Source of the DNA: Guillardia theta CCMP2712
Lineage: Eukaryota > Protista > Cryptophyta
Length of the DNA: 64,000 nt
Direction of reading: 5' to 3'
Assembly: GCF_000315625.1 (NCBI RefSeq)
Contig: NW_005434480.1
Location: 1-64,000, forward strand
Shown here: positions 30,706 through 64,000 of the stretch, in pieces
Numbering within the stretch: the stretch's first letter is position 1
Layout: each line of letters opens with the position of its first letter
Program-made: the position numbers and the translations under genes
The notes under the pieces: model-generated
The model's input: the letters and a program-made list of their open reading frames with translations, nothing else
Told to the model about the DNA's origin: nothing
The model's database searches: none

Positions 30706-31044
30706 TGATTTCAAGAATTTGAATGTTTCTTCTTCCTTACTACCTATGTATTTTGATTCTTAGAATTTGAATCATTGTTACCGCAACTTGATCACACTCC
30801 TTGACCTATTCTGTCCATGAGTGATTCATTAGCACGTGACTAATCACGAGCTCGTAACGTGACTGCAAAACAGCAAAAAGACTTCATTTCGAGCTGCTGA
30901 CAGTCAATAATTACCATACAGAGCCGTTGCAGGATGTTTACTCAACTGCATATCAACATTCTTTTAGTCCATCCTTCCACCTTGTCCTACCTGCATGGCC
31001 CTACTTGTCCATTCTCCCTGCCCCTGCCCATGACTCCATGGCCC

Positions 31045-32578: not shown

Positions 32579-33417
32579 GATTGGAAGAGAAGATTTGCGT
32601 GTTTGTGTGCAGGTCTCTTTCGATTAGCGTAGGAGAACAGTGGATATTCCCGTAGTCTTTATCATCTTGAAATTGATGTGCACAAGTGCAGTGGATATAC
32701 CTCAAAAGCTGTATTGTTGCGTTACAAACATGTGATCGTGTTACAGACATTTCAAGTAGAGAAATCGATCAGACCATCTTGTGTTCACACAAACGCCCGC
32801 CGTTATCCACTTTACCATGGACCCTACTCATATGTATAGTACCCGTTCGAGTCATCAAAGAATTTGGGGTATCTCCACTTCCTTTCTTGACCCCTACCTA
32901 CACATTCTATTCCCAAACTCTGGAGAGTCCGCAACAGACGCGAACCGCTCGAACGCAACGTTTCGGAGCTTGTGGAGTCCGTGCGCACATGTTGTAAAAG
33001 TACTTTTTAATCCTGGTCACGATGCATATCAAGAGATATCAAGAGCTCTTGATATGCCCGGAGATCCTGCGGGACTGAAGTTACTACGATGTTACTACCC
33101 GTAGATACACTGTAAAAGCCTTTTGGTACCGGAAGCCGGTACTGGAAAACCCTACCAATAGTGAAGGATGGTATCAAAGTGCAAGTAACAAAAATTGAAT
33201 TATAAGTTGGATATCAGGCGGTCTGCGGTGCCACGAACTAGAGGAGGCAAGGGGGTAGTCCTACCCCTAGTCTGGTGGTAAACCCAAGGGTAAAAGGAGG
33301 GGTAGACAACTTACCTTCGTATTGTAAACTTCAACGGCACCCTGCCGGATACTTAGAGGGGTGGGTCTATCCTGCCTCCTTCCTCCCCTCCCGCGCATGC
33401 GCTGCGCTAGGGTCGCC

Positions 33418-36400
33418 ATGCCCCCCGACATGTCTGGGCTGCAGGTGCTGCTGTCCTGCTCGCGACGAGCTCCCATGCTGACCTCTTCTCAGGCGATCTT
33501 GCTGCTCCTCCTCTCCATCAGCTGTCCTGCGCATGCTGCTGTCGTCTCGCAGTCTGGGATTAAGTACACAGTCGCTGAGACGGCTCAGCTTCAGATGGAA
33601 GGAGGCGCCTCGGATCTCAAAGCGACAGACCTCAAGATCTACTGGGGGTCGCTGGGAGCTTGGAGCGAAGGGAGTGACATTCTTGCATCGGATACCGTCA
33701 TCGAAGTTTATCTCCCGCGCTTTTCAGGAGGATCGAACATCTTCGGCGCATACAGATCTGGCAGCGCAGAGACAAGCGTCATGTGGATGAAGCAAGGTCA
33801 AGTCGTCACCATATCTGAGAGCGTGTCCAAGCCATGGGCAGCAGGTCTCCCTGTGTCAAGCCAGTCTTCGCTCGAGGCTGGTCCGGGGGTGGGAGGATGC
33901 TTTGGCATCACCCAGGACCTTTCGTCGAATGCTTTCGATCTCAAGCAGCTCCAAGCAAACTCCTTCTCCATGTGTCATTGGGACTCACAGAAAGAGACGC
34001 TCCGTCTCCTCATGTCCTCATCCCAGCCCATCACAGGCGTGTACATCAGCAAGGTCTCCTTGTATCAGAACTATGACGTTCACGGCAAGCAGAACGGGCT
34101 GGGCCCTCTCCCGCCCATCGGAGGGATAGACGAGCACTGGTATCAGCTAGCGAATGTGGCCGTGTATCAGGCATCTGGATCTTCACGAGGCTGTGCGGTG
34201 AGGGCGATCAGTGACTTTCCGTCGACGCCTTGCACGAGCGATCTCTTGGTGTATCAAGTTCCCTTCGACCAGTATCGCTCAGTGAGGTTCGGTACGGACC
34301 TCCCTCCCATCCCTACAAGAAAAGGCGCAGGAGCCGTCGGCACCGTAGCTCCTCCAGCCTTCGTCTATGCGGCAGCGTCAGGCAACAACGATGGGCCCAA
34401 TCAAGCTGTCTGCATCACCGTCACTCTGATCAGCTCGGCCACCCTCTACTCGGCTGGCGTCAATCCCACCACCATCACTCTCACCGGACTGACGGGAGCC
34501 TCTACCACCAGTCAGCCCGTGCGGCTCTTTCAGAACAAGTGTCAATGCCAAGGCTCAAGCCCGGTGCAGGACTTGATGCCTGCGAGGTTTCGAACGTCCA
34601 CCACCGCCAACACCGTCGGCTCAGCAGACTTCAAGGCTGACGGGACCCTGACCTTTCAGCTCATACCCGGGCATTACATCCAAGCTGGAGAGGTGCTGAC
34701 CTTCTCCTTCAGTCTTGTGACGGGTGCCAACCCTCAGTCGTCTCGAGACCTCAAAGTGTCAATGTCCGGCCAGGCGTGTCTGACCAATGACTTCTGTACG
34801 TTACCCAAGTCAGTAGCGATCACGGTTGCGCCGACCTCGTTTGACTCGTCGTCGAGGATCTTGGAGGTGGTGGGCAAGAAGCTGAGGGTGTCGATGTTTC
34901 AAAGCTCAAGCGACCCTGGCTCACTGACCAACCTCTTTGTGACGCTCCGGCCCAACTTCAACGTCGAGGTAGGGTCGGTCATCAGCATTCAGGGCCTCTG
35001 TGGCTCGCAGAGCAACTCAGCCTATGTCCCTCTAGTCAGCAACAGGCTCAACGGCGGGACGCCGCTGACCGACACATGTACTGGAAACCCGACCGAGGTC
35101 GACCTTGCCGACTACTGGCCAGGCTCAAGGCTGGACTGGAGTGGCGGGGGACCTCTCAAGATCACTGTGGCGAGCAGCTTGAGTCTCGTTGCTCGCGGTA
35201 CTTACGCTCTGTCATGGACTTGGCGGAACCTGGACTTGGCTCACCCGGCGTGCTCGATGACTGTCAGTATGCAGAAAGGAGGAGACGTGGTGAGCGCGGA
35301 GGCTGTAGAGAACATCGGCAACACAGTCGGCACGGTGCTGAGTCCTGGGTTTATCAAGTACAAGATCGGACAATCGACTACCCGTCCTGACGTTGCCAAC
35401 TACATCTGCGTGACGCTGAGAAGCAACTTTCGTGTCTCCACACTCTCCAACACCCAAGGTCAGAACAACCTGGCCCAGATTACTATCTCAGGCCTACAGG
35501 GATCTCAAACGACAACAGCGCTGTTCGTCAAGGCTTGTCCGTCATACGACTGGAGCCTGATGCAGCTACAGCCCGAGTCTGATCCGCCAACAGCTCACTT
35601 CATCGACCAGATTACGGGAGGTACACTCCATCATACGACAAGCTGGTCGTCTGGATCAGCCGTCCTGACCGTCAACCAGGACGACGTTGCAAGTCAGATG
35701 TACTACTCGATCCCTCAGCAGCAGGACATTGTGTTTGCTCTCAGGCTCAAGAACCCCAAGGTCTCCAACCCTTGTCAATCAGTGACCATGAGCTTCTCTG
35801 GTGTTGGCCCTGGCAACCGCTTGGTCACGCAGACGGTCAACATGGTGCAGAACCGTGTCGATAGAGCCCTCGAGGACGGTGAGACAGACGGAGACGTGTG
35901 CGTGCTCAAGACGTACGATTACAGCTTCCTGACTCGAGTCATCGCCCAGTCAACCTCGGTCGTACAGGAGAAGAACGTCATTACCGTCACCTTGAGGTCT
36001 AACATGGACCTGTTGAGCTCCGTCTACAGTCCTCAGATCACCATCTCTGGTCTCACAGGAGCAGACACAGCCGTGACGTCCTTGTCTGCTGCTGCCATCA
36101 CAGACCAGTACTTCCCCAACATCCAGAAGTCGAGCTGGGATAAAGCACGAGGAGTGCTTGTAGTCACTCTTGCTCCAGGAGCTTGCCAGCTGCCTGTCAA
36201 GGGTCGACCGTCTAATTGCATGCATGCTGGCTGGACGTATGCATGGAGTTACACCTTGACGAATGGCGTGACGGAGCAGGCCAGCCCTTCTGTCTCCGTG
36301 TCATGTCAGTTTGCTGAGAACAAGCTGTCGAGCCCACAGCTCATGGCTTCGCCGATGCGCAAAGACTTGCACGCTCTCTACTTGACGAGGCAGCTGCTCA

Positions 36401-39400
36401 ACAAGTATGACATCGGGCAGTTGAGTCCGGCTCCTGGAGCTGTCAACCCTGTTTGCATTACCTTGAGACCCAGCAAGTCTATCAATGCGCCGACGACCTT
36501 CACTCTGACGGGCTTGGACATGTTCTCTTCCGGTACCAAAGTAGCCTTGTACGATGAGTATGGGGTATCGCCTCTTACCAGCGGGCTGTTCCAGACAGTT
36601 GGGGCTAGCCCGCAAGACAACTACGCGACGTATGACAAGTCAACGATACAGTTTCAGCTGGGCCCGTCACAGTCGCTGCAGCAGAACTCCAAGTACAAGT
36701 TTTGTTTCCAGCTCACCAACGTCAAGACAGGACAAGCGACCTGCCCTCAGGTCTCGCTGACAGTAGATTCACCGTCTGCACCTGCCGTGTACCGAGGAGC
36801 TCAGTCGTATCTCTGCAACAATGATGTGACCAGGAAGGTAGCCGGCTACACGTCTGAGCCGTCAGGGTGTGCGGGCTACATCTCAGATCGCAAGTTCATA
36901 TCGTCCAACATCAGGTCGGGATCGAATGTGACAGGCAGCACAGTCTGGTTGACGATGGAGCTACAGCCTAACTATCCTCTCGCCTCGGGTCAGACTATCA
37001 CAGTCGGATCGTTCATCAGCATGAAGAACGCTGGATCATCGGACATACCATGTACGATAGCCAGGAACGGGCAGGTTGTCAATGCCGCTACCAACAAGCA
37101 TCGCGCCAAGGGCATAGCGCCTCCGGCTGTGTTCAACAGCGTATGCAAGTACCTCGACAACACGATACAGATCTCGTACACCGGGGCGTCAACGCAGTAC
37201 TCATCTTCCGTCTACGACCCGTTCTACAACGTCAATGCTCGCCGATCCAAGGGCCTGTACAAGGTGGAGGTCACAGCGGGAGGGTCGGGGTATCAGTCTG
37301 CTAGTGTGATCATATGCGACGTTACTCCTGGAGCTGAGTTCTGGACGAAGCCGACATGCACAGCTGCTGGGGTAGTGTTTGCTGCCGGCAGCTCTGCCTC
37401 AGCAGCCGCGACCGTGATCTCCGGCACCGTCACGTCCATCAGCCTGACAGCGCCTGGCTCAGGCTACACGATACGTCCGCAAGTCTTGATCGTCGACTCG
37501 TCGGGCTCCGGGAGCGGCGCGCAAGCAGAAGCGTTCATCTACGATCACTCCATCTACACAGTCCAGCTGCAGCTGGTCAACCAGGGCACTGCCGCCAGCG
37601 CTCAAGCTCTGACGGTCACATCCGGCTTATCATTTGTGTCTGCGACGCTAGACAGTGGTTACGAGGTCCGAGCAAAGTCCAGCATGCAGCTCCAGGAGCA
37701 GCCCAGCAGAGATGTCGTGTTCACGGTCACTCCCGAGCATAACCTCTACGAAGGCGACATGCTCCTCGTCAACCTGCCTGCCTACGACGTTGTCACGGGT
37801 CCCATCTTCGGCGTGACGTCGTCGCCCAACCCGGCCTTCACCACCTTCACCACGCAGCTGGAGTGGGAGCTCAACTACTACCAGGAAGATCGCGCTCGAG
37901 CATACATCAGCAACGGCTGGGTGGCGGACGGGAACAGGCATCGGTCAGGAGACGGAGACGTGGACGGCTTGTTTGTGCTGTCGCGGGATGACGATGGCTA
38001 CAACAAGAACAAGGACTTGTGCTGGAGCCGCGTGTCCTGCCCGTGGGGCCTTCCGGACAGCGACATCACCTTCGGGGGTCCATCGAAGACGCTGGTGCTG
38101 ACCAAGGTGACCAACGGAGCCTCGACGACTCTAGGGTACACGCAGGACATCTGCTACAGGAACACCAGCGTCAACCTCCTTCAACCGTCGGACTATGTCG
38201 GCATGCAGCTCAAGTGCCGCAACAATCAGCACACGGTGACAGCCGGCGGTCAGGTCACAAGCGTGCGAGTGCGGCACGGGGGCCTTGTGGTCATCAGCGG
38301 GAGATACTCGGAGAGCTCGGGAGTATCAGGAGCCGCGCCGACGTTTGTGGCATCTGGCGCGACCGATCAGGCAACGGGGACGCTGCTGTACCAGGTGGTG
38401 GGAGTCCAGTACGTGTCAGGCAGCTCGTTGGCAACTGGTGACACGATCGTCTTCGATTCTACCTACCAAGTCCTGCCGGCGAATGCTACCATCTCTTCTC
38501 TCTACAGCACCAGCCCAGCTGTGCATGTTACTGCCCCCGGGCTGTACTCCGGATATCCTTATGCGACCGTGACCGGGAAGAACACCCAGCTACGAGTGCT
38601 TGTCTCTGTGGCGAGTGCCAGCCTGACGTCTCAAGGCAGCGGATACACGTCCATCCCCACCATCACCACCTCGCTCAAGCCAAGTGTCGGCCTGCCCTCG
38701 ACAGTCCAGCAGCTTGAGCTGCCAGTGTTTGACGTCTCCTTGACCAACGTGACGAGCACCGTTGTCACCCAGTCTATCCTCGACTACAACCCAGCTAGAC
38801 AATGCTTCGTAGTGGCGGAAGAGTTTCCGACTTCCTTCTTGAGCGACTGTCAGGTCGTGCCCAAGGAGCAGGTCGGTCGGTACACCGGCATGACAGCGAT
38901 GATCGGGTCCAGCGAGTACGTCATCAAGCAGGGAGCAGGCGGCGTCTACTGGGTGGCAGACCTCAAGGGCAACAAGCCTAGAAGCATCGACCTGGCCAAC
39001 AAGCCCTACACCATCTACACGCAGCTGCAGCTGCAGGTGGCGAAGGGCAAGTGGATCCGACAGGGCGAGAGCGTCAGCATCAGCATCCCCGGCTACCGGT
39101 TCAAGTCGGTCCCCAGCGACCCCAACGCGTTCGTCACTCCCTCTACGGACGACGCCTCCAAGACCATCCGAGAGAGGACGAGGTTTCAGTTCGCGACGCC
39201 CGTCAGCTTTCGCAACGTCGGGCTAGCGGGCTCTGCTGCTTCGCGGATGCTTGTGCTCGGCGGTGCCATGTCGTCAGGCGACACCTGCACCATCCAGGGA
39301 AGCGACATCGAGAGACCCCAGGCGCCCGACGGGGTGACGGTCAACCATGCTGAGACCATGACAAGCGTCGGAGGGAGCGGGCCTGTGTTTGCTCCTCCTT

Positions 39401-42400
39401 CTACTTGGGGCTCGGGCTATCTGCGACCCGGGAGGTTCTACGGCACCTGCACCTCTGGCAGGCGCCTGTCGGGCGTGTTCATGCTCGAGGGGCAGAGGTC
39501 AGGCATCGAGCTGATCGAGATCGTGACTCCAGGAACAAGCTGCAGCGCCAACGTCCAGGTCACCATCTCCAGTCCCGACAAGGACGGGGTGGCTGATGGG
39601 CTGACCAACACCCCGGTCTGTCCGTCCGACAGCTCTCTATGCTCTCAGGCTACGGCAGTCGCGACTGTCAGCGGAGGGTCCATCACCAGCATCGCCCTCA
39701 CCAGCGCGGGCAGAGGGTACTTCTTCCCGCCTACCGTGACGCTTACGAACCCCAGCTCCAACACGCCTTGTGACGCCTTTGCGATAGCGCACTTGTCTCA
39801 CAACTTCACCTCTCGTCTGCGGGTGACAGCAGACTCCAACCTGATGATGTACCACCCCCAGCGAGATCACTTCGACTCCCTCACTGGCCTGCACTCGACC
39901 GTCTTCCCCGCGGTCGCTCTGTACAAGCGATATGATGCGAGGAAGTCCAACGCTGAGGTCGGAACAGGATACGTGGCTGCCATAGTCGTGACGTCTCTAC
40001 CGCCGTCGTCTTGCACAGGACCCATCACCATCGAGCCTCCGCCCTCAGGCAGGACCGCGAGGGCTCAAACAGCAGCCAACGGCGGCGTCACCTCGATCGA
40101 GGTCATCGACGGAGGGTCCGGGTACGAGTATCCGCCAGCTGTGACCCTGCCGTGCACAGACGGCAGCGCCCGGGCGATCCTAGGCTTCGTGACCTCAGAC
40201 GTTCACATGGCCGGCCCGAGAGCCTCTTCGTACACTGGCATGCAGTCGGCGCTGCTGACGTCATCGTCCAAGGCTCCCGCCTTCCGCTCTACCATGGACT
40301 CGCCGGTGGTGGTCGGCTTCAACAAGGCTTGCAGCACTGCAGTCACGCAGACGATGCTGAGGGCAGGCAGCTCGTGGAACAGCTCTCGAGTCACAGCTGT
40401 GACGGTCCCGCAGCAGGGGGTGTCGGGGTTTGCGTTCGGGTTCACAAGCGTGAAGATAAGCCCGTCAGCTATCAACGCCAACGGTCTGGTCGACGCTCAT
40501 GCCGACGCCGTGGCGGTCCCCACCTGGTCCTTTCCTGTCTCGGGGTCGAGGCTGGTCAACGGGGAGCTTGGCGTAGTGCACTACAACGGGCCTACGACCG
40601 TGACTAATCTCTTCAGCTGCGACGGGTCGGTGCTGGTGTTCAGCTCTCCGCAGCGGCCAGGAGGGCAGGCGCTCAAGATCAAAGTCTCCCAAGCTGCGGG
40701 CGCGAGCCTTCCGAGCTACGAGATCGTACAGCAGGGTCAAGGGTACGCCAATATCCCCATCGTTGTCGACATGGAGTTTAGCGTCAGAGGGGCGGTCAAG
40801 AGCTACCGACAAGACTTTGCGGACCTGAGCAGCAGCCAGCAGACGCTCTGCAAGCCTTCCTTCTTCTCGCTCAACACGGCGTACCAGGGCACCAACGTCT
40901 ACTCGGGCTTCGTCATAGCCTCAGGCACTGTGGCACAGCAGACAGGCCTGACTCTCGACGGAGCTCTCATCACCCACGAGGGATACGGATACCAGAGCTC
41001 GGGCTCCGGACCCATCGCGACCTTCAGCTGCAGCGGATGCTCCAGCAGCGCCTGTGCTGACAAGAGCGCCAACTCCATCGCCAACCAGGTGTGCACTGCC
41101 TCAGAGCTTCAGGTGGAGGCGACGGTGAGCGGAGAGTGCTCGGGCTCGTGCGAGCAGTCGGTAGCGACCAGCGCCTTCTACTCGCCCAGCAACCGCGACG
41201 GGCTGCAAGTCTGCTCGCCGGCGGACGGAGCGGCAGGAGACTACAGGACGCGCAAGACGCTGCAGATGCGCGTGTCGAGCGGGCCGTCGGCGTACTCCTC
41301 CAGCAACGTCTACACGGCAAGACGCAGCCAGGGCTTCCAAGGCCCGCGAGGCTCCTTGATCTTCAAGATCGCAGCCAACGAGGCGTTCGCGTCCGCCTCG
41401 CTCTGTCAGCCCCCGCGCGTCCTCGTGGAGCATCAACGTCGTCGCTCTGCCCGGGTCGCTGCCGGCATGCCCAGCTCCCACTCTTGGCGCTTACCCGAGA
41501 AGTGGGATGGTCGCGTCTCGGGTCGAGCTCGTGAGGAACGTCTCGCTGCCAGAGCTCAACCAGGGGGCCGCAAACGTCCAGCCGACTTGCAGCAGCGGGT
41601 CGTTTGTTGTCAAGTCTCTCTGCCCGGGCTCCAAACTCTGCACAAGCGCCTACTCGCAAGCGGAGCTCAACCCGCTGCCTTCCTGCTCAGGCTCCTCGCA
41701 GTGCAGCGCATGTGCTACGTTCCCTTGCCCCGCCCGCACCTGCGCGGCCGACAACTGTCCCTCCTACCTGTCGACAGTCCTTGATGCCTCGCTGTCGAGT
41801 GTGGTCGCTGATGAGGCGCTGGCAGCCATCGGGTGGGATGCTCGGACCCACCAGCCAGTCCTGCTCAACGCGGGCTTCGGCTTCTCTCCCAGCACGCCTA
41901 ACCCGCTGAGGCTCGAGTTTCCTTCGGACGCAGGACAAGCGTATCCGTGCGCGGAGATTCTACTCTACTTCACCGACGGCCCCAGCTCAGACGCCCTTCA
42001 GCCGGGCCCTCTCTACTGGCCGGGCGACTTGTCCTTCGATCAGAGCTCTGTCCGCAACCTGGCGGGCCAGGTGACCGGCGTGGACTATCTGCTCAGACCC
42101 GGCTTCATCAACGCAGTCTACGGCTCGTTCAGCAACTTCCCTGTCACGACTCTTGTGGCTCTCAGAGACCAGGCGGCTCGTCGGCTCCTGCAGACCTCCA
42201 GGTCGGCTGTGCTGGAGGTGCAGTCAGTGTCGGGCTTCAAGGTGGGCGACTACGTGCGGCTTGTGGATGAAGTCCTTCTCGTGGACGCGATCAGCGTCCA
42301 GCAGAGCACTCTCACGGTCACTCGAGGCGCGCTCAACACCAGCATGGCCTTGACCTTCGCCGCAGGCACCGTTGTCAGGACCTTCAACCCGGGCTCCGTG

Positions 42401-45400
42401 CTGCTCAAGAGCGTCGCAAGGGACGCGACCAGCATTGACGTGTCAAACGCCGCCAAGTTCACGTCGGGCAGATACATCCAGATAGAGAAGGAGGTCATGT
42501 ACGTCACTGCCGTAGGAGCCTCGTCGCTGACTGTGCTTCGAGGACAAGAGGGGACGATCGCAGCCAGTCATGCCGCATTCAAGGCGGTGGGGTACGTGCG
42601 ACTGTCTCAGAAGTATCCCATCGTGCTGCAGGAAGCCGTGACGGCGGATCAAACCTCGTTGACTGTATCGGACGCGAGCCTGTTGTTTGCGGGGGCCTTC
42701 ATCCAGGTGCTGGGCGAGATCATGACAGTGACTTCGATATCCGGCGACAAACTTACCGTCCAGCGAGCCCAGGTAGGAACATCGGCGTCATCGCACCCGA
42801 CGGGAGTGCTGGTGAAGCTGACCACTGGGGCGAGCCTGGGGCGGTCAATCTACAGGTCAAACATGGTTCTGCTGGCTACGATCAGCTTTAGCGACACTGT
42901 ACTACGTTTGAAGGACCCAGTGAAGGACACGCAGTCGTCAGGCTTTCAGCCAGGCGACTACCTGCTGGTATATAATTATTATGATTTGTTTGATGAGGCG
43001 ATGTTGGTATTGAGCGCTGAGACGGCTACTGTATCGGGGTATCTCTACCAGAACCTGACGGTCCAAAGAGCTCAGTTTGGATCAAATCCTGACAAAGCTG
43101 ATTTGTTGGAAGGGATCTCAGTGAACTATCTATTCAGCCCACGAGTCCTGGAGCAGGAAATCGATAAGACGGCAACCAACGCGAACTTCTCAAACACTTA
43201 CGGACTGCAAGCCGGAGATCTGCTGTGGGCGTTTCCAGGGTGGGATAATGATGTGTACTTCGAGGTGATGGAGTATCAGTCGGACGGCAGTGTGCGTCGA
43301 GAAATGATCCCTGACTTTCAGGGTTACCCACAGGCTACCAGCGTGTCATCAGGAGCACTGGTGCAGACCATTGCAAAGCCTGCTTATCTTAACACTCGGT
43401 ACAGAACAAATTACAAATCTTGTGCAAGCCCACCATGTGAGGTGCCCTTATCAAGGGTATCAGACTTGGTAGTTGGAGACATCGTGAGCAACGGCTATAC
43501 TCTTACTCTGGAAGTCAAAGCTATCAACACTAAAGACAGCACAATCACTGTGACGAATGTTTTCGCACCAACCGAAGTTGTGAAACTGTCAAATACAGAG
43601 AGTACATTTTCGAAGGTTGAGGGTTTGAGGCTCCTCAACTCAACCTTTAAGGTGACAGATTATCAGGCTACCTACAGCATCTCCTTGACCACTCAAGTGT
43701 CCGACTTCTACTCCCCGGGTGACTTCGTGTGGATCTGCCAGGCTGATGGCAAAAATGGTTTGTTCCGAGTCGAAGCTGTCGCAGACTACTCCATGGACGT
43801 TACTCCATTCACCAAAACTCAGGGGCCTTCATTCGAAAAAGACAAGGCAGTCCTGTACAAGTACGAGAGATTCGACGTTCTTCACGGTGATGCGCTATAC
43901 CCCGGCGACAGCGTCATGTTCTCGGCGGATGCTTATGGGGGGACAGCGCAAGTCATCTCGTCCTCTGAGAACGAAGTCCGCCTCAAGTTCACGGCAGGAG
44001 AATACGATAAAAAGGAATTTTTTCGTAACGTACATTGGGCCCATCAGCTGCTCCCTGTCTCCAAAAAGAGCTTCGCCAGGTCCAAGCTCGCTCTAGACAT
44101 CAACTCGACCGTATCCCGCATCATCCTCTTCGACGCCTCCGGGTTCCTAGCCGGCGACAGCATCGTCGTCGACGACGAGATCATGACCATAGACAACCTC
44201 AACGGCAACCTCCTCCAAGTCTCTCGAGCTCAAGCAGGCACTGCTGCTGCCCCTCACAAGCTCGCAGCATCAGTCGCATGGACCGCTCCCGTCGCCAAGA
44301 CGTCCTCGCCAGTCTCTGCCGTGACTCCTCTGACCCGGCGCGACCAGCACCTGAGGTATATCGCACAGCAGGGCTCCATCACCCTTCCCAGCTCGATCCT
44401 GCAAGCCTCCAGCAGCTACCAAGACGTCTGGGCACAGCTCGACGAGGAGATCATCATGATCCGGCAGCCCGCCTCAGGCACCGTCCCCGCGGATGATCGC
44501 GGGCTGAGAGGAACGTCGGCGGCTGCCCACGTGACCAACACGCCCTACAACATCCCCAGCGCGGTCTTCTCCTGGCAGCTCAACGTCAGGTCAAGTCTGC
44601 TGGGCTCGTCGGGCTTCTCAGCTCTGCCTGTGTACAGCATGAACGCGGCTGGAGTGATCGCAATGTCAGGAGTCCACGTGCTGTCGGGAGGAGCCGGAGT
44701 GACAAGCAGGCCATCCTTCCAGCTGAGCCTCAACAGGCTCATTGACGGCGACGCCCAAGGACAGGCGGTCGGAGGAGCGACTTACTCCTACCGCCCTCTC
44801 GTCCAGCAGACTTACCTCGGGGTCGACCTGACGGACAAGTTCACCAAGAGACTCATCAGGCCGACTGTGACCTACCCCGTGACGTACCAGCCTTGGAGGT
44901 TCCCAGCAGACCCTCTCTACTTCCAGGACAGGATGGACGGGTATGATCCGAGCTCAGACAGCTCCCTGCTGTCTCCCATCAACGGCTCCAACGCCATCAA
45001 CGCCAGCTCTCCGATCCCTCACGAGCCAGGCTCGCCCGTGTTCGTGCTGGACTCCTTCGGTCAGATGCTCGGCGATCAGGCTGTACCCCAGCAGAGCCTG
45101 TCGGTGTCAGACGGCGGCGCGTACTCCTACTCCATCACCAGCCGACCGTCCGTGCTGGACTCTACCTGGAGCAGCCCGGCCCTGCTCATCGTGTCGACGT
45201 CGTCGGCTACTAAAGCCGACATGTACCTCAACGACACCATTGCGGGCTCCTACTCCAACGGTCAGAAGACCGCTCTGCTGTCTGCCAGCAGCAGGATGTT
45301 CGCATGGAAGACAGACCCGCGCAAGCTTGCTGTGCTCGTCGGGGCCTCGTCAGCAGCGTCCGCGCCGGCGAGCGCGAGCTCGTCGACGACTCCAGCAGGA

Positions 45401-45643
45401 GGTCAGAGCATCGGAGCCATCATCGGAGGCGTCATCGGGGGCGTTGTCGGAGCAGCTCTGCTCGGCCTGCTCGCCTACAAGCTCCTTGTGCCCAAGGCTG
45501 TCGGCAAGGCGGTAGACGAGGAGATGGTGCCTGTCTACCTGCCTCAAGCCTATCCTGCCCTTGACGTGCAGTACGCCGCTGCAGCCCCGATGCCTGTTGG
45601 TACTCCAGCGTACGGCCAGCAGCCCATGGCATACGGAATGTGA
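33418..45643 (+). pseudogene. Giant membrane protein paralog B (~4,120 aa if repaired), frameshifted by a deletion at 41432-41450
   Basis: ORFs 33361-41784 and 41507-45643 are collinear with A and near-identical to E. A probable in-frame 48-nt intron at 33445-33492 gives the signal peptide MSGLQAILLLLLSISCPAHA. TM IGAIIGGVIGGVVGAALLGLLAY; tail ends YGQQPMAYGM. Confidence 0.8.
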
Positions 45644-50199: not shown

Positions 50200-51223
50200 C
50201 CTCCTCCTCGCTCGTCCTTCAGCCCCAGCACAAGGGACCTCTTGTCTTCCCTCGCTCCTCTCGAGCAGACCGTCTGCCGTCCTCGTCGTCCTCGTCGCGC
50301 TTGAGCTTGAGGTCCGTAGGGAGGAGTCAGAGAGAGCGAGAGGCCTGTAGCAGGGATGAGCAGCGGGACCTCTGAGGCTTGTCTGACAGCCTTGAGCCTC
50401 TCAAACGTCTATCTCTTGTATGTCTGTTCTGTTTCTCGTATTTCTCTTCTTTGTCAGTCTTGTCACTAGGATGTCTCTCGCTTTTCTCTGTCTCCTTCTG
50501 CCTCTCTTCTGTCTGTCTTGTAAACATTTCTTGTTCTCTTCTACATCTTCTTCTGCTTTGTTACCACTCGCATCTATCTCCTCATACCTACCTCACGACG
50601 TATACTCTGTCTCTCTCCCTCTTTCTGCATCTGGGCTGCTGGTCGTGATTCTGCTCTTTCTCTCTTCGTTCTCTCTTCGATCTCTTCCCCCCTTTCTCAT
50701 CCTCTCGTAAACATCCAATCCTGTAAACATCTCTAGATGTCTTCTGCTTATTCATCTTTTCCTTTCTCACCATCTCCCTCTCCCTTCCCTTGTCTTTCTC
50801 TCTCCTCTCGCATGCTCCTGCTTCCACCGGGCCTGCTGGATATTCAGCGTAACTTTCCCACCCCATGGACCAAAAACAAACTTTTGCACATACTTTCCAA
50901 ACTTTGGCGCACCTACTCCACCAACCCATAATACGGGCTGCAAGGAACCCCGCCCACGACCCGGCTTCCCACCGCATTGCTCCCACGCTTCTGACCCTCC
51001 ATACCCTCCGCAAACCCTTTCCAAACCTCCGCATGCCCGAAACCATCCCCACCTCCCGCTCCCCCTCCCCCGCCCTGGAGATTTGCGGAGACACCCCACC
51101 CCACCCTCCTCTCCTCAAGTCGAGAAACTAGAGGTACCCCCTCCCACGGCCAGATTTCCGGAGACCCCACGGGCCCTTGGCGTACCGCCCCCCTCCCCGG
51201 CCTTCGAGGGCATGGAGGTTTGG

Positions 51224-51828
51224 TGGACTCCTTCGTTCAGATGCTCGGCGATCAGGCTGTACCCCAGCAGAGCCTGTCGGTGTCAGACGGCGGCGCGTTC
51301 CTACTCCGTCACCAGCCGACCGTCCGTGCTGGACTCTACCTGGAGCAGCCTGGCTCTGCTCATCGTGTCGACGTCGTCGGCTGGTACAGCTGACATGTAC
51401 CTCAACGACACCATTGCGGGCTCCTACTCCAACGGTCAGAAGACCGCACCGGCGAGCGCGAGCTCGTCGACGACTCCAGCAGGAGGTCAGAACATCGGAG
51501 CCATCATCGGAGGCGTCATCGGGGGCGTGGTCGGAGCCGCTCTGCTCGGCCTGCTCTCCTACAAGCTGCTTGCGCCCAAGGCTGTCGGCAAGGCAGTAGA
51601 CGAGGAGATGGTGCCTGTCTACCTGCCTCAAGCCTATCCTGCCCTTGACGTGCAGTACGCCGCTGCAGCCCCGATGCCTGTTGGTACTCCAGCGTACGGC
51701 CAGCAGCCCATGGCTTACGGCATGTGAGAAACGCGGCTACTTGATGATCCGGCAGGCAGCGGCTGATGCTGCTGTCTGCCTCGTAGAGCTCGATACGAGC
51801 GATCCGTTTCATCGGATAAGAATAAAGT
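51224..51828 (+). pseudogene. Paralog C: duplicated 3' end (TM, tail, 3'UTR) of gene B
   Basis: Matches B 45048-45744, with a 2-nt deletion (~51298) and an internal deletion of about 90 nt; same tail and downstream sequence. Confidence 0.92.
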
Positions 51829-52421
51829 GAGAGTGAACCTGACGGGCCTGATTGCTCGTATCAACAATCAGAAGGGGGGAGGTAGAGGAAGGCAGGTACT
51901 AAAAAGAACCTTTCTGTGAAGGGTTGTGCAACATCTATCGGAGGAAAGGCTAGTCTCTACCCTCCTTCTTCGAAGCTATAAAAGGATTATCGCACCTTTC
52001 ATGTGTGTGCCATGCCTGTGAGTGTTGGCTTGTCTCGTCTGTTGTGTGAGAATAAAGAGAGATAGATCTCCTTCTTGATGTCACCCTGCGGAGAAATCCA
52101 GCGCAAGTTCTTGCTGCAGACCTATGTTCAAGGTCGTAAAGCCTCGGGATGTGACAAAGAAGCAGAAATGCAGGAGCCGAAGCAACAGCAAGGAGGCAAA
52201 CTGAAAATATCGCTCTAGCGGCAGAGCGCTGGGAGTGCTGGGGAGAGAAAAGACGACAGGACACAAGCACGACCGAAGTATGGGAACAACATGCGTAGTC
52301 ACTGAATGCGTCATCGTTCTTTACTCACGAAAAAAAAGCAGGAGTGGAGGGAAAAGACAAAACGCGTCTCATGCGTTGAGTCGGATCATGAAGGATGCTT
52401 ACCAACCAGCAGCTGGTCAGC

Positions 52422-55400: not shown

Positions 55401-56399
55401 GTATGAGGGTGATGATTCTATCGTGCTACTGCAAGGTAAAGTACATTTAGTCAAATCTGATGTCAATTTAAACACAGATGTCGCGATCGACACAACGGTA
55501 CGAGCAGGCCAGGGATCCCGTATCGAAACTGTCGTTCCAAAGAGACCTCTTTCTATGCCCACAGTCGTGCCGGTTATAGATGTGATCTGAACGATCTCAT
55601 GAAAATAATTGGAACCATCATCGTACGAATAATCGTACATGTGCATGTAAAGTCCAACTTTCATGCCCTCAAAAGAGATCACGGTCATCGACGTATCATC
55701 CTTTGCCAGTGGCGATGCCAGGGCTGTCGGCAGCAGAGTCACCGTCTCAAGGGTCAAAGACCGGTACTCAGCCCCGACCACGTGCGCTGCCGCTGTCGTT
55801 TGCGCCTGACCTCGCAGGACGGTGAACGACGTGGAGGTCAAGCTTGTGATCTTCATGATCTCCTCGTCGATCTGGATGTACATGTTGGCCGTGAAGCCTC
55901 TCGTCGTGAAGACAGTGATCGACGTGTCTGCTGCCGTCACGGCTGCCTTGATTCTTGCGACTGCTGTCGTGGGGTTGTACAGCCCGACGAGTGAGCCCGC
56001 AGCTTGAGCAGGTGTCTTCGTCCCGGCAGACTGAGAGTAGCCTCTGTACACGCCCAGCTGCTTGTTGGTCACGTCCACACTCGCTACAAACATGAACTCG
56101 TCGTTGATGGCGATCGTATGTCCGACCTTAAAGCCTGAAACTGACGCAACGGAAACCGTTTCCAGCGCTCCTGCGGTAGACGCGGGGATGGCCTTCTCCA
56201 GTGCCGTACCGGGATAGAAGAGCACCACACTTGCTCCCGGTAGATGTTGTGCTGCTGTCGTCCCTCCCAGTGCCCTCTCACTCACTGTGATCGAGTTGCC
56301 CGTGACTTGACCGACCTTGAAGATCTCCGCGTCAATCAAGATCAGGTCTCCTGCCTTGAACAACGATGCGTCTGCGACCGCGAACTGGATGTTCGTACT
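52422..56399 (-). pseudogene. Paralog D: C-terminal third of a giant membrane protein, ORF intact but 5' portion absent
   Basis: 1,313-aa ORF collinear with A from FKAGDLI.ID.EIFK, with a B-type TM and tail. Homology stops at ~56399 (STNIQFAVADASL), with an in-frame TAA at 56408-56406 and no signal peptide. Confidence 0.75.
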
Positions 56400-58582: not shown

Positions 58583-58745
58583 GTGTACTTCATCCCAGAC
58601 TGCGGGACAACAGCAGCATCAGCAGGGCAACTGAAGTGAGTGCGGGCAGCAAGATTCCCTGAAGACTAGAGACACGTCGGCGGGCGTAGCGTCCTTCACC
58701 TAGCAAGGCGAAGGCTCTGGGAGGGGAAGAGGAAGAGAAGCAGGT
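58583..58745 (-). pseudogene. Relic of the 5' end (signal-peptide region) of another giant-protein paralog
   Basis: Minus strand tcagttgccctgctgatgctgctgttgtcccgcagtctgggatgaagtacac aligns with B 33518-33569 tcagctgtcctgcgcatgctgctgtcgtctcgcagtctgggattaagtacac. Confidence 0.75.
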
Positions 58746-61700
58746 GGAGCCAACGTAGGAGGCAAAGAAGGATGCACTTTCTCGCCGACGGCCTTGGGCG
58801 TGATGAGCTTGTAGGTGAGCAGGCCGAGTAGAGCTGCTCCTACCACGCCCCCGATGACGCCTCCGATGATAGCTCCGATGTTCTGACCTCCTGCTGGAGT
58901 CGTCGATGAGCTCGCGTTCGCTGGCGTGGACGCTGCTGCTGAGCTTGCAACCGCTATTGTGGACGCTGCTGCTGAGGCCCCGACGAGCACAGCAAGCTTG
59001 CGCGGGTCTGTCTTCCATGCAAACATCCTGCTGCTGGCAGACAGCAGAGCGGTCTTCTGACCGTTGGAGTGGGAGCCCGCAATGGTGTCGTTGAGGTACA
59101 TGTCGGCTGTAGTAGCTGACGACGTCGACACGATGAGCAGGGCCGGGCTGCTCCAGGTAGAGTCCAGCACGGACGGTCGGCTGGTGACGGAGTATGAGTA
59201 CGGGCCGCCGTCTGACACCGACAGGCTCTGCTGGGGTACAGCCTGATCGCCGAGCATCTGGCCGAAGGAGTCAAGCACGAACACGGGCGAGCCTGGCTCA
59301 TGAGGGATCGGAGAGCTGGCGTTGATGGCGTTGGAGCCGTTGGTAGGAGACAGCAGGGAGCTGTCTGAGCTCGGGTCATACCCGTCCATCCTGTCCTGGA
59401 AGTAGAGAGGGTCTGCTGGGAACCTCCAAGGCTGGTACGTCACGGGGTAGGTCACAGTCGGCCTGATGAGTCTCTTGGTGAACTTGTCCGTCAGGTCCAC
59501 CCCGAGGTAAGTCTGCTGGACGAGAGGGCGGTAGGAGTAGGCAGCTCCTCCGACCGCCTGTCCTTGGGCGTCGCCGTCGATGAGCCTGTTGAGGCACAGC
59601 TGGAAGGTCGGCCGGCTAGTCACTCCGGCTCCTCCAGACAGCACGTTGACGCCAGACACTGCGATCACTCCAGCCGCGTTCATGCTGTACACAGGCAGAG
59701 CTGAGAAGCCCGACGAGCCCAGCAGACTTGACCTGACGTTGAGCTGCCAGGAGAAGACCGCGTTGGGGATGTTGTAGGGCGTGTTGGTCACGTGAGCAGC
59801 CGCCGACGTTCCTCTCAGCCCGCGATCATCCACCGGGACGGTGCCTGAGGCGGGCTGCCGGATCAAGATGATCTCCTCGTTGAGCTGTGCCCAGACGTCT
59901 TGGTAGCTGGTGGAGGCCTGCAGGATCGAGCTGGGAAGGGCGATTGAGCCCTGCTGTGCGATGTACCTCAGGTGCTGGTCGCGCCGAGTCATAGGAGTAA
60001 CGGCAGAGACTGGCGAGGACGTCTTGGCTACGGGAGCAGTCCATGTGACTGATGCTGCGAGCTTATGAGGGGCAGCAGCGGTGCCTGCTTGAGCTCGAGA
60101 GACTTGGAGGAGGTTGCCGTTGAGGTTGTCTATGGTCATGACCTCGTCGTCGACGACGATGCTGTCGCCGGCTCGGAACCCGGAGGCGTCGAAGAGGATG
60201 ACGCGCGTTACGGTCGAGTTGATGTCCAGAGCGAGCTTGGACCTGGCGAAGCTCTTCTTGGAGACAGGCAGCAGCTGATAAGTGAAATGTGCGTCTCGAA
60301 TCCACGAATCATCACGTTCTGTGCCATATTCTCCTGAGGTGAACTTGAGGCGTACCTCGTTCTGAGAGGACGAGATGACTTGTGCTGTCCCGCCATAACC
60401 GCCCCCCGACAACATGACGCTGTCACCAGGAAATAACGCGTCACCGTCGAGGACGTCAAACTTCTCGTACTTGAATAAGATTGCTTTGCCTTGTTTGAAT
60501 GTGGTTTGGCAAGCGAATCTGGAGCAACTGAAAGAGATGACGTCCATGGAGTAATCTCCGACAGCTGTGACTCGGAACAAACCATTCTTGTAATAAGGTA
60601 ATCCCCACTTGTCCAAGTCAGCCATGCCGATTCTCACGAGGTCACCCGGGGAGTAGAAGTCTGACACTTGAGTGGTCAAGGTGATGCTGTAGGTATCCAG
60701 AGTATCTGACAGTGAGACAGTCGAGTTGAGGAGCCTCAGACCCTCGACCTTCGTAAATCGATGGTTAAAATTTAGATTCAAATCCTCGTTTGGTGCAAAA
60801 ACCTTGGTTGCCGTGATTTTGCTGTCTGTAGTGTTGATAGCTTTGACTTCGAAAGCTGCATAGCCATCGCTCACAATGTCACCAACTGCAAAGTCTGATA
60901 CACTAGATAAGGGCACCTCACATGGGCTGGTACAAAACCTTTTAGTCACTTTACAGGTTGGAGGATACTTCAAGTAAGCAGGCTTTGCAATGGTATGCAC
61001 CAGCGCTCCTGCTAACACGCTGGTCGCCTGTGAACTACCCCGATAGTCAGGGATCATTCCTCGACGTACACTGCCGTCCGACTGATACTCCATCACCTCG
61101 AAGTACACATCATTATCCCAACCTGGAAACGCCCACAGCAGATCTCCGGCTTGCAGTCCGTAAGTGTTTGAGAAGTTCGCGATGGTTGCCGTCTTATCGA
61201 TTTCCTGCTCCAGGACTCGTGGGCTGAATAGATAGTTCACTGAGATCCCTTCGTAGAAAACAAATTTGCCTGGATTTGACTGAAACTGAGCTCTTTGGAC
61301 CGTCAGGTTCTGGTAGAGATACCCCGATACCGTAGCCGTCTCAGCGCTCAATACCAACATCGCCTCATCAAACAAATCATAATAATCAAATACCCGCAGG
61401 TAGTCGCCTGGCTGAAAGCCTGACGACTGCGTGTCCTTCACTGGGTCCTTCAAACGTAGAACAGTGTCGCTAAAGCTGATCGTAGCCAGCAGAACCATGT
61501 TTGACCTGTAGATTGACCGCCCCAGGCTCGCCCCAGTTGTCAGCTTCACCAGCACTCCCGTCGGGTGCGATGACGCAGATGTTCCTAGCTGGGCTCGCTG
61601 GACGGTAAGTGTGTCGCCGGATATCGAAGTCACTGCCATGATCTCGCCCAGCACCTGGATGAAGGCCCCCGCAAACAACAGGCTCGCGTCCGATACAGTC

Positions 61701-64000
61701 AACGAGGTTTGATCCGCCGTCACGGCTTCCTCCAGCACGATCGGATACTTCTGAGACAGTCGCACGTACCCCACCGCCTTGAATGCGGCATGACTGACTG
61801 CGATCGTCCCCTCTTGTCCTCGAAGCACAGTCAGCGACGAGGCTCCTACGGCAGTGACGTACATAACCTCCTTCTCTACCTGGATGTATCTGCCCGACGT
61901 GAACTTGGCGGCGTTTGACACCTCAATGCTGGTCGCGTCCCTTGCGACGCTCTTGAGCAGCACGGAGCCCGGGTTGAAGGTCCTGACAACGGTGCCTGCG
62001 GCGAAGGTCGAGGCTATGCTGGAGTTGAGCGCGCCTCGAGTGACCGTGAGAGTGCTCTGCTGGACGCTGATCGCGTCCACGAGCAGGACTTCATCCACAA
62101 GCCGCACGTAGTCGCCCACCTGAAAGCCCGACACTGACTGCACCTCCAGCACAGCCGACCTGGAGCTCTGCAGGAGCCGACGAGCCGCCTGGTCTCTGAG
62201 AGCCACAAGAGTCGTGACAGGGAAGTTGCTGAACGAGCCGTAGACTGCGTTGATGAAGCCGGGTCTGAGCAGATAGTCCACGCCGGTCACCTGGCCCGCC
62301 AGGTTGCGGACAGAGCTCTGATCGAAGGACAAGTCGCCCGGCCAGTAGAGAGGGCCCGGCTGAAGGGCATCTGAGCTGGGGCTGTCGGTGAAGTAGAGTA
62401 GAATCTCCGCGCACGGATACGCTTGTCCTGCATCCGATGGAAACTCGAGCTTCAGCGGGTTAGGCGTGCTGGGAGAGAAGCCAAAGCCCGCGTTGAGCAG
62501 GACTGGCTGCTGGGTCCGAGCATCCCACCCGATGGCTGCCAGCGCCTCATCAGCGACCACGCTCGACAGCGAGGCATCAAGCACTGTCGACAGGTAGGAG
62601 GGACAGTTGTCGGCCGCGCAGGTATGGGCGGGGCAAGGGAACGTAGCACATGCGCTGCACTGCGAGGAGCCGGAGCAGGAAGGCAGCGGGTTGAGCTTTG
62701 CTTGCGAGTAGGCGCTTGTGCAGAGTTTGGAGCCCGGGCAGAGAGACTTGACAACAAACGACCCGCTGCTGCAAGTCGGCTGGACTTTTGCGGCCCCCTG
62801 GTTGAGCTCTGGCAGCGAGATGTTCCTCACGAGCTCGACCCGAGACGCGACCATCCCACTTCTCGGGTAAGCGCCAAGAGTGGGAGCTGGGCATGCCGGC
62901 AGCGACCCGGACGAAAAATCGAGCTTGATATTCGGAGCGGTCAAGTAGCCGGATCCTGCGTTGATGACTTTGAGCACGTACTGGTAGGGAGCAGCGTCGG
63001 CAGCGAAGCCCTTGCTGGCTGCTGTCGAGCTCGCAGACGGGCCGTTGGTGTAGGGGTCCGAGCTGGTGTCGATGTAGTCGAGCAAGACCTCCGCCTGCAC
63101 TCCACCTGAGGGAGGAGGCTCCACGAGGACGCGCGGGGGCTGACAGAGCGAGGCGGACGCGAACGCCTCGTTGGCTGTGATCTTGAAGATCAAGGAGCCT
63201 CGCGGGCCTTGGAAGCCCTGGCTGCGTCTTGCCGTGTAGACGTTGCTGGAGGAGTACGCCGACGGCCCGCTCGACACGCGCATCTGCAGCGTCTTGCGCG
63301 TCCTGTAGTCTCCTGCCGCTCCGTCCGCCGGCGAGCAGACTTGCAGCCCGTCGCGGTTGCTGGGCGAGAAGAAGGCGCTGGTCGCTACCGACTGCTCGCA
63401 CGAGCCCGAGCACTCTCCGCTCACCGTCGCCTCCACCTGAAGCTCTGAGGCAGTGCACACCTGGTTGGCGATGGAGTTGGCGTTCTTGTCAGCACAGGCG
63501 CTGCTGGAGCATCCGCTGCAGCTGAAGGTCGCGTTGGGTCCGGAGCCCGAGCTCTGGTATCCGTATCCCTCGTGGGTGATGAGAGCTCCATCGAGAGTCA
63601 GGCCTGTCTGCTGTGCCGCAGTGCCTGAGGCTATGACGAAGCCCGAGTAGACGTTGGTGCCCTGGTACGCCGTGTTGAGCGAGAAGAAGGATGGCTTGCA
63701 GAGCGTCTGCTGGCTGCTGCTCAGGTCCGCAAAGTCTTGTCGGTAGCTCTTGACCGCCCCTCCGACGCTAAACTCCACGTCGACAACGATGGGGATATTG
63801 GCGTACCCTTGACCCTGCTGTACGATCTCGTAGCTCGGAAGGCTCGCGCCCGCAGCTTGGGAGACTTTGATCTTGAGCGCCTGCCCTCCTGGCCGCTGCG
63901 GAGAGCTGAACACCAGCACCGACCCATCGCAGCTGAAGAGATTAGTCACGGTCGTAGGCCCGTTGTAGTGCACTACGCCAAGCTCCCCGTTGACCAGCCT
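58700..64000 (-). CDS. Giant membrane protein paralog E (5' part beyond the window), inverted near-copy of B with an altered tail
   Basis: Frame is open from the window edge for more than 1,757 aa; aligns with B 40549-45505; retains the segment deleted in B; TM present, but the tail diverges after PKAVG. Confidence 0.88.
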   Translation of the reverse strand, partial: RLVNGELGVVHYNGPTTVTNLFSCDGSVLVFSSPQRPGGQALKIKVSQAAGASLPSYEIVQQGQGYANIPIVVDVEFSVGGAVKSYRQDFADLSSSQQTLCKPSFFSLNTAYQGTNVYSGFVIASGTAAQQTGLTLDGALITHEGYGYQSSGSGPNATFSCSGCSSSACADKNANSIANQVCTASELQVEATVSGECSGSCEQSVATSAFFSPSNRDGLQVCSPADGAAGDYRTRKTLQMRVSSGPSAYSSSNVYTARRSQGFQGPRGSLIFKITANEAFASASLCQPPRVLVEPPPSGGVQAEVLLDYIDTSSDPYTNGPSASSTAASKGFAADAAPYQYVLKVINAGSGYLTAPNIKLDFSSGSLPACPAPTLGAYPRSGMVASRVELVRNISLPELNQGAAKVQPTCSSGSFVVKSLCPGSKLCTSAYSQAKLNPLPSCSGSSQCSACATFPCPAHTCAADNCPSYLSTVLDASLSSVVADEALAAIGWDARTQQPVLLNAGFGFSPSTPNPLKLEFPSDAGQAYPCAEILLYFTDSPSSDALQPGPLYWPGDLSFDQSSVRNLAGQVTGVDYLLRPGFINAVYGSFSNFPVTTLVALRDQAARRLLQSSRSAVLEVQSVSGFQVGDYVRLVDEVLLVDAISVQQSTLTVTRGALNSSIASTFAAGTVVRTFNPGSVLLKSVARDATSIEVSNAAKFTSGRYIQVEKEVMYVTAVGASSLTVLRGQEGTIAVSHAAFKAVGYVRLSQKYPIVLEEAVTADQTSLTVSDASLLFAGAFIQVLGEIMAVTSISGDTLTVQRAQLGTSASSHPTGVLVKLTTGASLGRSIYRSNMVLLATISFSDTVLRLKDPVKDTQSSGFQPGDYLRVFDYYDLFDEAMLVLSAETATVSGYLYQNLTVQRAQFQSNPGKFVFYEGISVNYLFSPRVLEQEIDKTATIANFSNTYGLQAGDLLWAFPGWDNDVYFEVMEYQSDGSVRRGMIPDYRGSSQATSVLAGALVHTIAKPAYLKYPPTCKVTKRFCTSPCEVPLSSVSDFAVGDIVSDGYAAFEVKAINTTDSKITATKVFAPNEDLNLNFNHRFTKVEGLRLLNSTVSLSDTLDTYSITLTTQVSDFYSPGDLVRIGMADLDKWGLPYYKNGLFRVTAVGDYSMDVISFSCSRFACQTTFKQGKAILFKYEKFDVLDGDALFPGDSVMLSGGGYGGTAQVISSSQNEVRLKFTSGEYGTERDDSWIRDAHFTYQLLPVSKKSFARSKLALDINSTVTRVILFDASGFRAGDSIVVDDEVMTIDNLNGNLLQVSRAQAGTAAAPHKLAASVTWTAPVAKTSSPVSAVTPMTRRDQHLRYIAQQGSIALPSSILQASTSYQDVWAQLNEEIILIRQPASGTVPVDDRGLRGTSAAAHVTNTPYNIPNAVFSWQLNVRSSLLGSSGFSALPVYSMNAAGVIAVSGVNVLSGGAGVTSRPTFQLCLNRLIDGDAQGQAVGGAAYSYRPLVQQTYLGVDLTDKFTKRLIRPTVTYPVTYQPWRFPADPLYFQDRMDGYDPSSDSSLLSPTNGSNAINASSPIPHEPGSPVFVLDSFGQMLGDQAVPQQSLSVSDGGPYSYSVTSRPSVLDSTWSSPALLIVSTSSATTADMYLNDTIAGSHSNGQKTALLSASSRMFAWKTDPRKLAVLVGASAAASTIAVASSAAASTPANASSSTTPAGGQNIGAIIGGVIGGVVGAALLGLLTYKLITPKAVGEKVHPSLPPTLAPPASLPLPLPEPSPC

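Follow-up and report, generated by a model that had tools for sequence, protein, structure and literature searches.

The window analysed here comprises 64,000 nucleotides of Guillardia theta CCMP2712 (contig NW_005434480.1, positions 1 to 64,000) and carries two paralogous genes for giant type-I membrane proteins, B and its inverted copy E. Near their 3' ends, these genes share a block, located at positions 43316..44044 of the plus strand in B, in which they differ far more than on either side. This island is probably an old segment, rich in loops and under loose constraint: ectopic gene conversion would have made its flanks alike in the two genes, and the block itself would have escaped it. 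A previous interpretation based on the sequence alone (the sequence-only reading) considered it a hypervariable binding surface shaped by selection for change; positive selection on the block is not shown by our results, and it is possible that selection keeps the block modules of the different copies distinct.

According to the explanation that we favour, the paralogs would be old, and ectopic gene conversion would have recently homogenised the surroundings of the block in the copies B, E, F and L and, separately, in G and I. The conversion tracts would end at the block, which would retain its true age and, since the tracts stop there, would stand out as a sharply bounded island. The block itself would consist of five or six degenerate beta-barrel repeats of the phage-tail type, with grown hairpin loops, that resist conversion and drift under relaxed constraint; nowhere else in the C-terminal third of the protein would constraint be so weak or indels so frequent. 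Within it, about half of the codons, those of the strands, would be strongly conserved, and the loops would change at an approximately neutral rate and by insertion and deletion. What carries this explanation is the pattern of silent substitutions, a trough in the GC content of third codon positions (GC3), the enrichment of indels, the location of the changes in loops, and the discordance between trees. From these observations we infer conversion as the homogenising process, and sequence heterology, perhaps helped by selection, as the cause that halts it at the block.

An island of divergence between B and E

In a maximum-likelihood block scan, B and E differed at 24.6% of the bases within 43316-44044 and at 3.6% outside; the counterpart in E, deduced from the coordinates of the B/E alignment, is at 60278..61045 on the minus strand. 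Third codon positions alone delimited an island at 43327-44071 (31.7% vs 5.7% differing) with a likelihood ratio of 111.7, and the highest value among 200 shuffles was 19.0; the block is therefore sharply bounded, far beyond chance. The sequence-only reading had placed a sharply bounded block at 42960-44045. The sharp bounds were borne out but the start is approximately 350 nt too early for B versus E, given that the region 42960-43306 is nearly identical in both genes, with a silent divergence (dS) of 0.07. The sole exception is an isolated replacement patch of 33 nt (43079..43111, plus strand; GSNPDKADLLE versus QSNPGKFVFYE), which includes 11 replacement differences and one silent difference and carries a CAG common to E and paralog G; on both sides of this patch the sequence is identical in B, E and F.

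The clusters of replacements that had been pointed out inside the block are all present in the B/E alignment, i.e. GSNPDKADLLEG/QSNPGKFVFYEG, ICQADGKNG/IGMADLDKWGLPYYKNG, the TPFTKTQGPSF cluster and the YDKKEFF cluster. The protein alignment of the block shows seven indels, every one of them a multiple of three nucleotides. It had also been proposed that the block carries variable aromatic loops; these are indeed enlarged versions of the canonical hairpin turn of the repeats, but they are not what distinguishes B from E, since FPGWDNDVYFE is identical in both proteins and YNYYDLFDE differs at two residues; both loops vary only in comparison with other paralogs (F, G, I). The content of Tyr, Trp and Phe is modestly raised in the block (10-13% vs 7-9% in the 3' flank). 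An assembly artefact was ruled out as the source of the island, because independent raw DNA reads (X14) span the block with at least 99% identity and show no variants, and the contigs of another study (X2) match it without difference.

The same variable region is present in other paralogs

Six more copies of the gene with available DNA (F, G, I, J, K and L) were obtained from G. theta by a search of representative proteins combined with contig look-ups; the loci retrieved are all from assembly GCA_000315625.1. The first protein search gave only F, the close paralogs being concealed behind short cluster representatives. F (P0001, 899 aa) is encoded on scaffold JH993203.1 (L001:9993-12799), G (P0002, 4104 aa) on L002, I (P0165, partial) on JH993115.1 (L003:9200-14262), and L (P0172, 4150 aa) on L004; J and K correspond to P0170 (4089 aa) and P0171 (4176 aa). 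The family also includes a further copy, P0166, and the full-length Hanusia phi transcripts P0003 and P0009. The comparison of paralogs covers the C-terminal third of the protein.

The same island was found in all the close pairs, that is, among B, E, F and L and, independently, between G and I. The comparisons of F with B and of F with E show the same contrast between block and flank, although F is homologous to B from 42993 onward only. G and I, the second near-identical pair, are 2-8% different in the flanks and 15-41% different across approximately 42800-44050 (B coordinates), with the same 3' boundary. At the level of the family, the region 42800..44050 (plus strand) is a trough of both identity and GC3, is rich in gaps, and comprises five or six degenerate repeats with enlarged loops. 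The mean pairwise identity decreases from 0.6-0.8 to 0.3-0.5 over residues 430-845 of B and recovers abruptly at residue 847; the 3' boundary common to the B/E/F/L and G/I clades falls in the first canonical repeat past the block (44051..44290, plus strand). There are 112 gap runs in the variable region versus 2 and 7 in the flanks, which amounts to a 20- to 50-fold enrichment of indels. In all eight paralogs GC3 is 0.45-0.61 in the variable region and 0.68-0.81 in nearly every flank (the 5' flank of J has 0.61); a high GC3 in the flanks together with a low GC3 in the block is expected if GC-biased gene conversion acts on the former and not on the latter.

Silent divergence and phylogeny of the block and its flanks

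By Nei-Gojobori counting, the core of the block shows between B and E a dS of 0.535, a replacement divergence (dN) of 0.204, and a dN/dS ratio (omega) of 0.38; the corresponding values are 0.043, 0.018 and 0.41 for the 5' flank, and 0.105, 0.027 and 0.25 for the 3' flank. Estimates of dN in the core ranged overall from 0.20 to 0.23. In the core dS rises with dN, so that silent and replacement change are increased to the same degree. For B-E, silent sites are about 5-12 times as diverged in the block as in the flanks; B-F and E-F behave alike, and dN/dS barely moves.

Silent change was also measured at four-fold degenerate sites in codons whose first two bases are conserved, a measure that is immune to the misalignment of loops. 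In codons with a conserved amino acid, the four-fold divergence between B and E is 0.27 in the block versus 0.06 in the flank (p 4e-7), and in the seven close pairs (BE, BF, EF, BL, EL, FL and GI) it is 0.22-0.45 in the block versus 0.06-0.15 in the flanks (p 1e-3 to 5e-10). For the pairs of intermediate distance (K against B, E, F and L, and J against G and I), the values are 0.34-0.47 in the block and 0.30-0.34 in the flanks, and in five of these six pairs the difference is not significant. Were the block subject to a mutation rate of its own, its divergence would be raised in every pair. The pairs that include K or J, in which the silent sites of block and flanks have diverged almost equally, do not show this; a constant rate effect confined to the block is therefore ruled out, and it is the flanks of the close pairs that are too similar. 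From these comparisons, the block appears to give the real age of the paralogs, with a dS of approximately 0.5-1.0, similar to that of their split from K.

The trees of the block and of the flanks are discordant. The quartet formed by G, I, J and B resolves 58:3:7 and 34:5:3 in the flanks versus 42:28:23 in the block, and K is closest to G/I/J in the core and to B/E/L in the flanks. Within the close group, the tail of B is closest to F and its body is closest to E, and for B, E and F the three alternative groupings receive support of 12:11:7 in the 3' flank.

Codon models of the block

For the sequence-only reading, a dN/dS above 1, clustered on one face, would be the support for selection. 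In the core, omega is 0.37-0.52 in all the close and intermediate pairs. The standard comparison of the site models M1a and M2a gave a difference of twice the log-likelihood (2dlnL) of 14.5-27.9, with 6-9% of the block codons at an omega of 4-28 and none in the 3' flank. The codons flagged by M2a differ at all three positions and adjoin indels, so that they look like non-homologous loop residues. When the gaps were padded by two codons, the 2dlnL of M2a decreased to 11.4-12.7 for B/E/F(/G) and to 4.3-4.6 for four or five paralogs, and with a padding of four codons it decreased to 4.7-4.9 for B/E/F(/G). In addition, a null model with a neutral class whose overall rate may be 3-5 times higher fits better than M2a, and the addition of a class with omega>1 to this null improves it by a 2dlnL of 0-2.5. 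The M1a/M2a signal was discarded as evidence of positive selection on the basis of the gap padding and of the rate-heterogeneous null, and with these codon models no class of sites with omega>1 that is robust to alignment trimming and rate variation was found in the block. Instead, about 53-63% of the block codons are at an omega of approximately 0.1, and the remainder are at approximately 1.

In an AlphaFold model with a predicted local distance difference test score (pLDDT) of 72, variable residues account for 61% of the loop positions and 37% of the strand positions (Fisher p 2e-4). The preservation of the reading frame had been taken to imply selection, and the frame is in fact kept, as indicated by the seven in-frame indels between B and E and by C-terminal open reading frames (ORFs) that remain intact through the 112 gap runs of the family; read-through of K meets one stop, located within a predicted intron, and the other aligned C-terminal ORFs are intact. 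An open frame kept through so many indels denotes selection for a working protein. Diversifying selection, as it had been proposed, is not upheld: omega is below 1, silent sites diverge alongside replacement sites, and the class with omega>1 fades upon trimming and disappears when rate variation is allowed.

Alternative explanations

Some of the results are nevertheless those that would be produced by diversifying selection on ligand-binding loops, in which the loops of the degenerate repeats would form a recognition surface, novel variants would be favoured, and selection against homogenisation would exclude conversion from the block. Besides the M2a signal in block codons and its absence from the 3' flank, the variable sites are in loops; the ten members compared combine a common frame with a block that differs in each, and the island occurs in two independent clades with the same 3' boundary; in the K and J pairs, which are unconverted, omega is 0.37-0.5 for the block and 0.18 for the flank, a ratio of about 2.5; and the 33-nt patch at 43079 shows 11 replacement differences to one silent difference. 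We consider this explanation rather unlikely, because the mean dN/dS is 0.4-0.5, well below 1, the omega>1 class shrinks to a 2dlnL of 4.3-4.9 on gap trimming and of 0-2.5 with a free fast rate, the neutral fast-rate model fits better than M2a, and the flagged codons adjoin indels; tests of this kind are moreover known to be inflated by recombination, RNA from B was nearly absent in one run, and B carries an upstream frameshift. The idea that the block is a local mutational hot spot, with a higher mutation rate or error-prone repair, e.g. around indel-prone repeats, would account for the joint increase of dS and dN, for the extreme enrichment of indels, and for the silent excess of about 2-fold that persists even between clades. 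However, the ratio of block to flank silent divergence is about 5 in the close pairs and 1.2-1.8 in the K and J pairs, a fixed multiplier cannot give both values, and rate alone does not explain the discordance between the block and flank trees; this makes a hot spot extremely unlikely. A templated mutagenesis from a repeat donor was also considered and rejected, as the self-comparison of the window shows no copy of the block other than that of E.

Another proposal is that B, E and F are young duplicates of the whole gene, and that each block was overwritten, in the manner of a cassette, by conversion from distant or silent partial copies. Partial copies are indeed numerous (F, from B 42993; I, from B 41428; and a tail fragment at 51221-51837), and the block is mosaic, with one cluster at 43801-43829 in which B agrees with F and another at 43853-43895 in which E does. 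Against this, no donor was found: among the ten paralogs, the identity of each block to its nearest relative is no more than 59-64% within the B/E/F group and 74% in the case of G-I, and several unseen donors would be required, one for each close pair. Searches of protein databases did not reveal more block-bearing fragments, and the block alone (248 aa) found nothing, but these searches were length-limited and their blank result is weak evidence. Taken together, we judge a cassette exchange to be quite improbable.

The homogenisation of the flanks by gene conversion remains the explanation that we favour, and a number of points weigh against it. A permutation test of the pairwise homoplasy index (PHI) type did not show spatial clustering of incompatible sites (p 0.51 in the flank and 0.65 in the block), in a data set where 46-47% of the informative site pairs of flank and block are incompatible, and consequently no individual conversion tract is demonstrated. 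Silent divergence remains about twice as high in the block as in the flanks when the two clades are compared, which needs either occasional inter-clade conversion or a weaker constraint on the silent sites of the block. The likelihood of the codon models was written for this analysis (GY94, F3x4) and was checked only against the counting estimates, with which the omega of M0 agrees; and the structure models are of moderate confidence (pLDDT 72 and 68). The direction of transfer could also be the opposite, i.e. a recent duplication of the whole gene with blocks imported from unsampled donors.

Architecture of the proteins and identity of the repeats

The N-terminal ORF of B (33361..41784, plus strand), recognised by reading the ORFs and by comparison with G (P0002), has 73% identity to the first 2600 aa of this paralog and represents the N-terminal part of a giant type-I membrane protein; it includes a signal-peptide-like start near 33475-33540, with a hydrophobic leader ahead of AHA/AVV. 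The C-terminal ORF (41507..45643, plus strand; 1378 aa) comprises, in this order, a Cys-rich part, beta-barrel repeats, a conserved C-terminal domain, a Ser/Ala stalk, a transmembrane helix and a Tyr-rich tail. The transmembrane helix (IGAIIGGVIGGVVGAALLGLLAY), read directly from the sequence, is at 45410..45478 (plus strand) and is followed by the cytoplasmic tail. E (58700..63973, minus strand) extends past the end of the window; the public gene models are P0174 (4044 aa) for B and P0173 (4081 aa) for E. B and E belong to a family of at least ten giant G. theta proteins (about 4,100 aa), which carry a signal peptide and are anchored in the membrane at their C-terminal end. In these proteins the hydrophobic leader is succeeded by a very long ectodomain, and then, in order, by the Cys-rich stretch, the chain of about 75-aa repeats, the conserved C-terminal domain, the Ser/Ala stalk, a single transmembrane helix and a short Tyr-rich tail. 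The genes are about 12 kb in length and largely intron-free, and the C-terminal ORFs are uninterrupted save for introns predicted in some paralogs, either before the last exon or, in K and J, as short in-frame introns. In L (L004:12882-13011) and in G (L002, after 15401) the last 24-41 codons, approximately, of the tail are behind an intron, whereas the tail of B is within one ORF.

The canonical repeats of about 75 aa (42251..42830, plus strand), with the pattern GDxIxIxxEIMxV...LTVxRxxxGTxAxxH, match phage tail and tail-fibre families. Residues 292-441 of B matched the PHROG families phrog_1101 (tail protein, 4.6e-20) and phrog_11439 (tail fibre protein, 3e-18), and overall the canonical repeats matched phage tail-type families by sequence with E values of 1e-18 to 1e-29. 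The PHROG search gave no match within residues 500-850 of B, and the repeats of the block matched no PHROG or Pfam profile; no Pfam match was obtained for B, its upstream ORF, or the more distant family member D, and searches of PDB chains with phmmer gave nothing relevant, including no match to FMG1 of Chlamydomonas. At the level of structure, a Foldseek search of predicted viral structures (BFVD) gave 141 matches at E<=1e-3, mostly structural proteins of cyanophages (best 1.8e-14), and the search of the PDB with the 611-aa model gave weak rows only, with Chlamydomonas FMG1B at the top (E 3e-3, probability 0.21). A second model covered residues 690-930 of B and was built with ten sequences (pLDDT 68). 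In VIA, a canonical repeat aligned with 9in6_M (Z 9.7 over 78 aa, 20% identity) and with 8rk3_o (Z 9.3, 24% identity), and one repeat of the block aligned with 8vjh_A, of the tail tip of phage Chi (Z 8.3). These models indicate that the repeats of the family probably share the beta-barrel fold of phage tail, baseplate and capsid decoration proteins.

State of the copies

Between the two ORFs of B the frame is shifted by a deletion of about 188 nt relative to E, whose junction is at 41434..41451 (plus strand). In the public model P0174 this frameshift, in the region 41434-41551, is hidden: 26 residues are read out of frame, and a tiny intron, about 41 nt long, is predicted. B is possibly a pseudogene. 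In E the conserved cytoplasmic tail is lost after approximately 58781, and an unrelated Pro-rich sequence takes its place (58700-58790). At 51221..51837 (plus strand) the 3' end of B occurs a third time as a fragment, whose tail peptide is 100% identical. The homology of F begins exactly at B 42993, near the onset of the low-GC3 region, with nothing upstream; this copy also has a private stretch of 13 additional aa (GYVIFMLFASVDL-type) in one repeat of the block, perhaps an insertion or a short intron that is left unspliced. I starts at a point that matches B 41428 and is preceded by an inverted copy, 98% identical, of its own last 265 codons. Regarding expression, six RNA reads on B were found among about 20 million records of one run. 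B, E, F and I may be copies in decay; alternatively, conversion may maintain their similarity.

Other features of the window

Two more distant members of the family were observed in the window: A (4861-17115, plus strand; 4084 aa), with a DUF4215 and a ZU5-like match near the C-terminus, and D (52422-56363, minus strand; 1313 aa), which carries enlarged Tyr/Asp-rich hairpin turns, e.g. Y-DYSYDDGSNYFHE. The region 26016-32604 comprises three tandem copies of a unit, mutually 93-94% identical over approximately 1.2-1.4 kb, each with ORFs of about 150-280 aa. An ORF of 353 aa at 23773-24834 (minus strand) consists of internal tandem repeats; between 23959 and 24713 it matches itself at many offsets (84-93%). 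A run of 100 N at 22287-22386 marks a gap in the assembly.

Discussion

A pattern that resembles hypervariable binding loops under selection can arise from concerted evolution combined with relaxed constraint. Useful controls in cases of this kind are to measure silent change within conserved codons, to include pairs whose flanks have not been homogenised, to trim the alignment around indels, and to use site models that allow for rate variation. The phenomenon is of a known kind; the gene family and its variable module of fixed position are undescribed in the literature that was searched. A cryptophyte family of membrane proteins of about 4,100 aa, built from phage-tail-type repeats and with a conserved position for a variable module, is a natural candidate for functions in cell-surface recognition, adhesion or the glycocalyx of these algae. 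A more speculative proposal, to which we assign a low likelihood, is a repertoire system of at least nine or ten surface proteins with a frame kept uniform by conversion and a unique loop-rich recognition module in each, in which the numerous copies that are truncated or carry a frameshift (B, F and I, together with the tail fragments) would be a silent archive whose segments are copied into expressed genes; if true, it would represent a system of surface variation, or of self or partner recognition, in a free-living alga.

The repeats of phage tails, baseplates and capsid decorations are similar to those of G. theta in the sequence of the canonical repeat and in the predicted fold. In contrast, the Guillardia repeats are part of a eukaryotic type-I membrane protein with a signal peptide, a transmembrane helix and a cytoplasmic tail, and the hairpin turns of the block repeats are enlarged by 6-8 residues.

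The Chlamydomonas proteins FMG1B and FMG1A (PDB 9gos; 10.1101/2024.09.28.615573) are comparable in their architecture: each is about 4,000 aa long and strings together small beta domains whose peripheral loops are variable, a Cys-rich region and a C-terminal transmembrane segment are likewise present, and the cytoplasmic tail is common to the paralogs (10.1101/2024.09.28.615573). However, the FMG1 repeats are Ig-like units of about 100 aa with a conserved pair of Cys residues (10.1101/2024.09.28.615573), whereas those of Guillardia would be phage-type barrels of about 75 aa, with no sequence match to FMG1 and only a weak Foldseek match. The resemblance to FMG1 is thus best regarded as an analogy of architecture; homology of the repeats is not shown.

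For the evolution of the block, the appropriate comparison is with families under concerted evolution that keep an island resistant to conversion, a situation known from many multigene families. The paralogous merozoite surface antigens of the malaria parasite, which are described as shaped by gene conversion (PMC10919680), are an example of concerted evolution in duplicated genes. Guillardia differs from this example in being a free-living cryptophyte alga with genes of about 12 kb, in which individual conversion tracts are not resolved. The features that it has in common with families of this kind are the near-identical flanks, the old segment with sharp bounds in which silent and replacement divergence rise together, the discordance between the trees of block and flanks, and the fact that the genes involved encode surface proteins.

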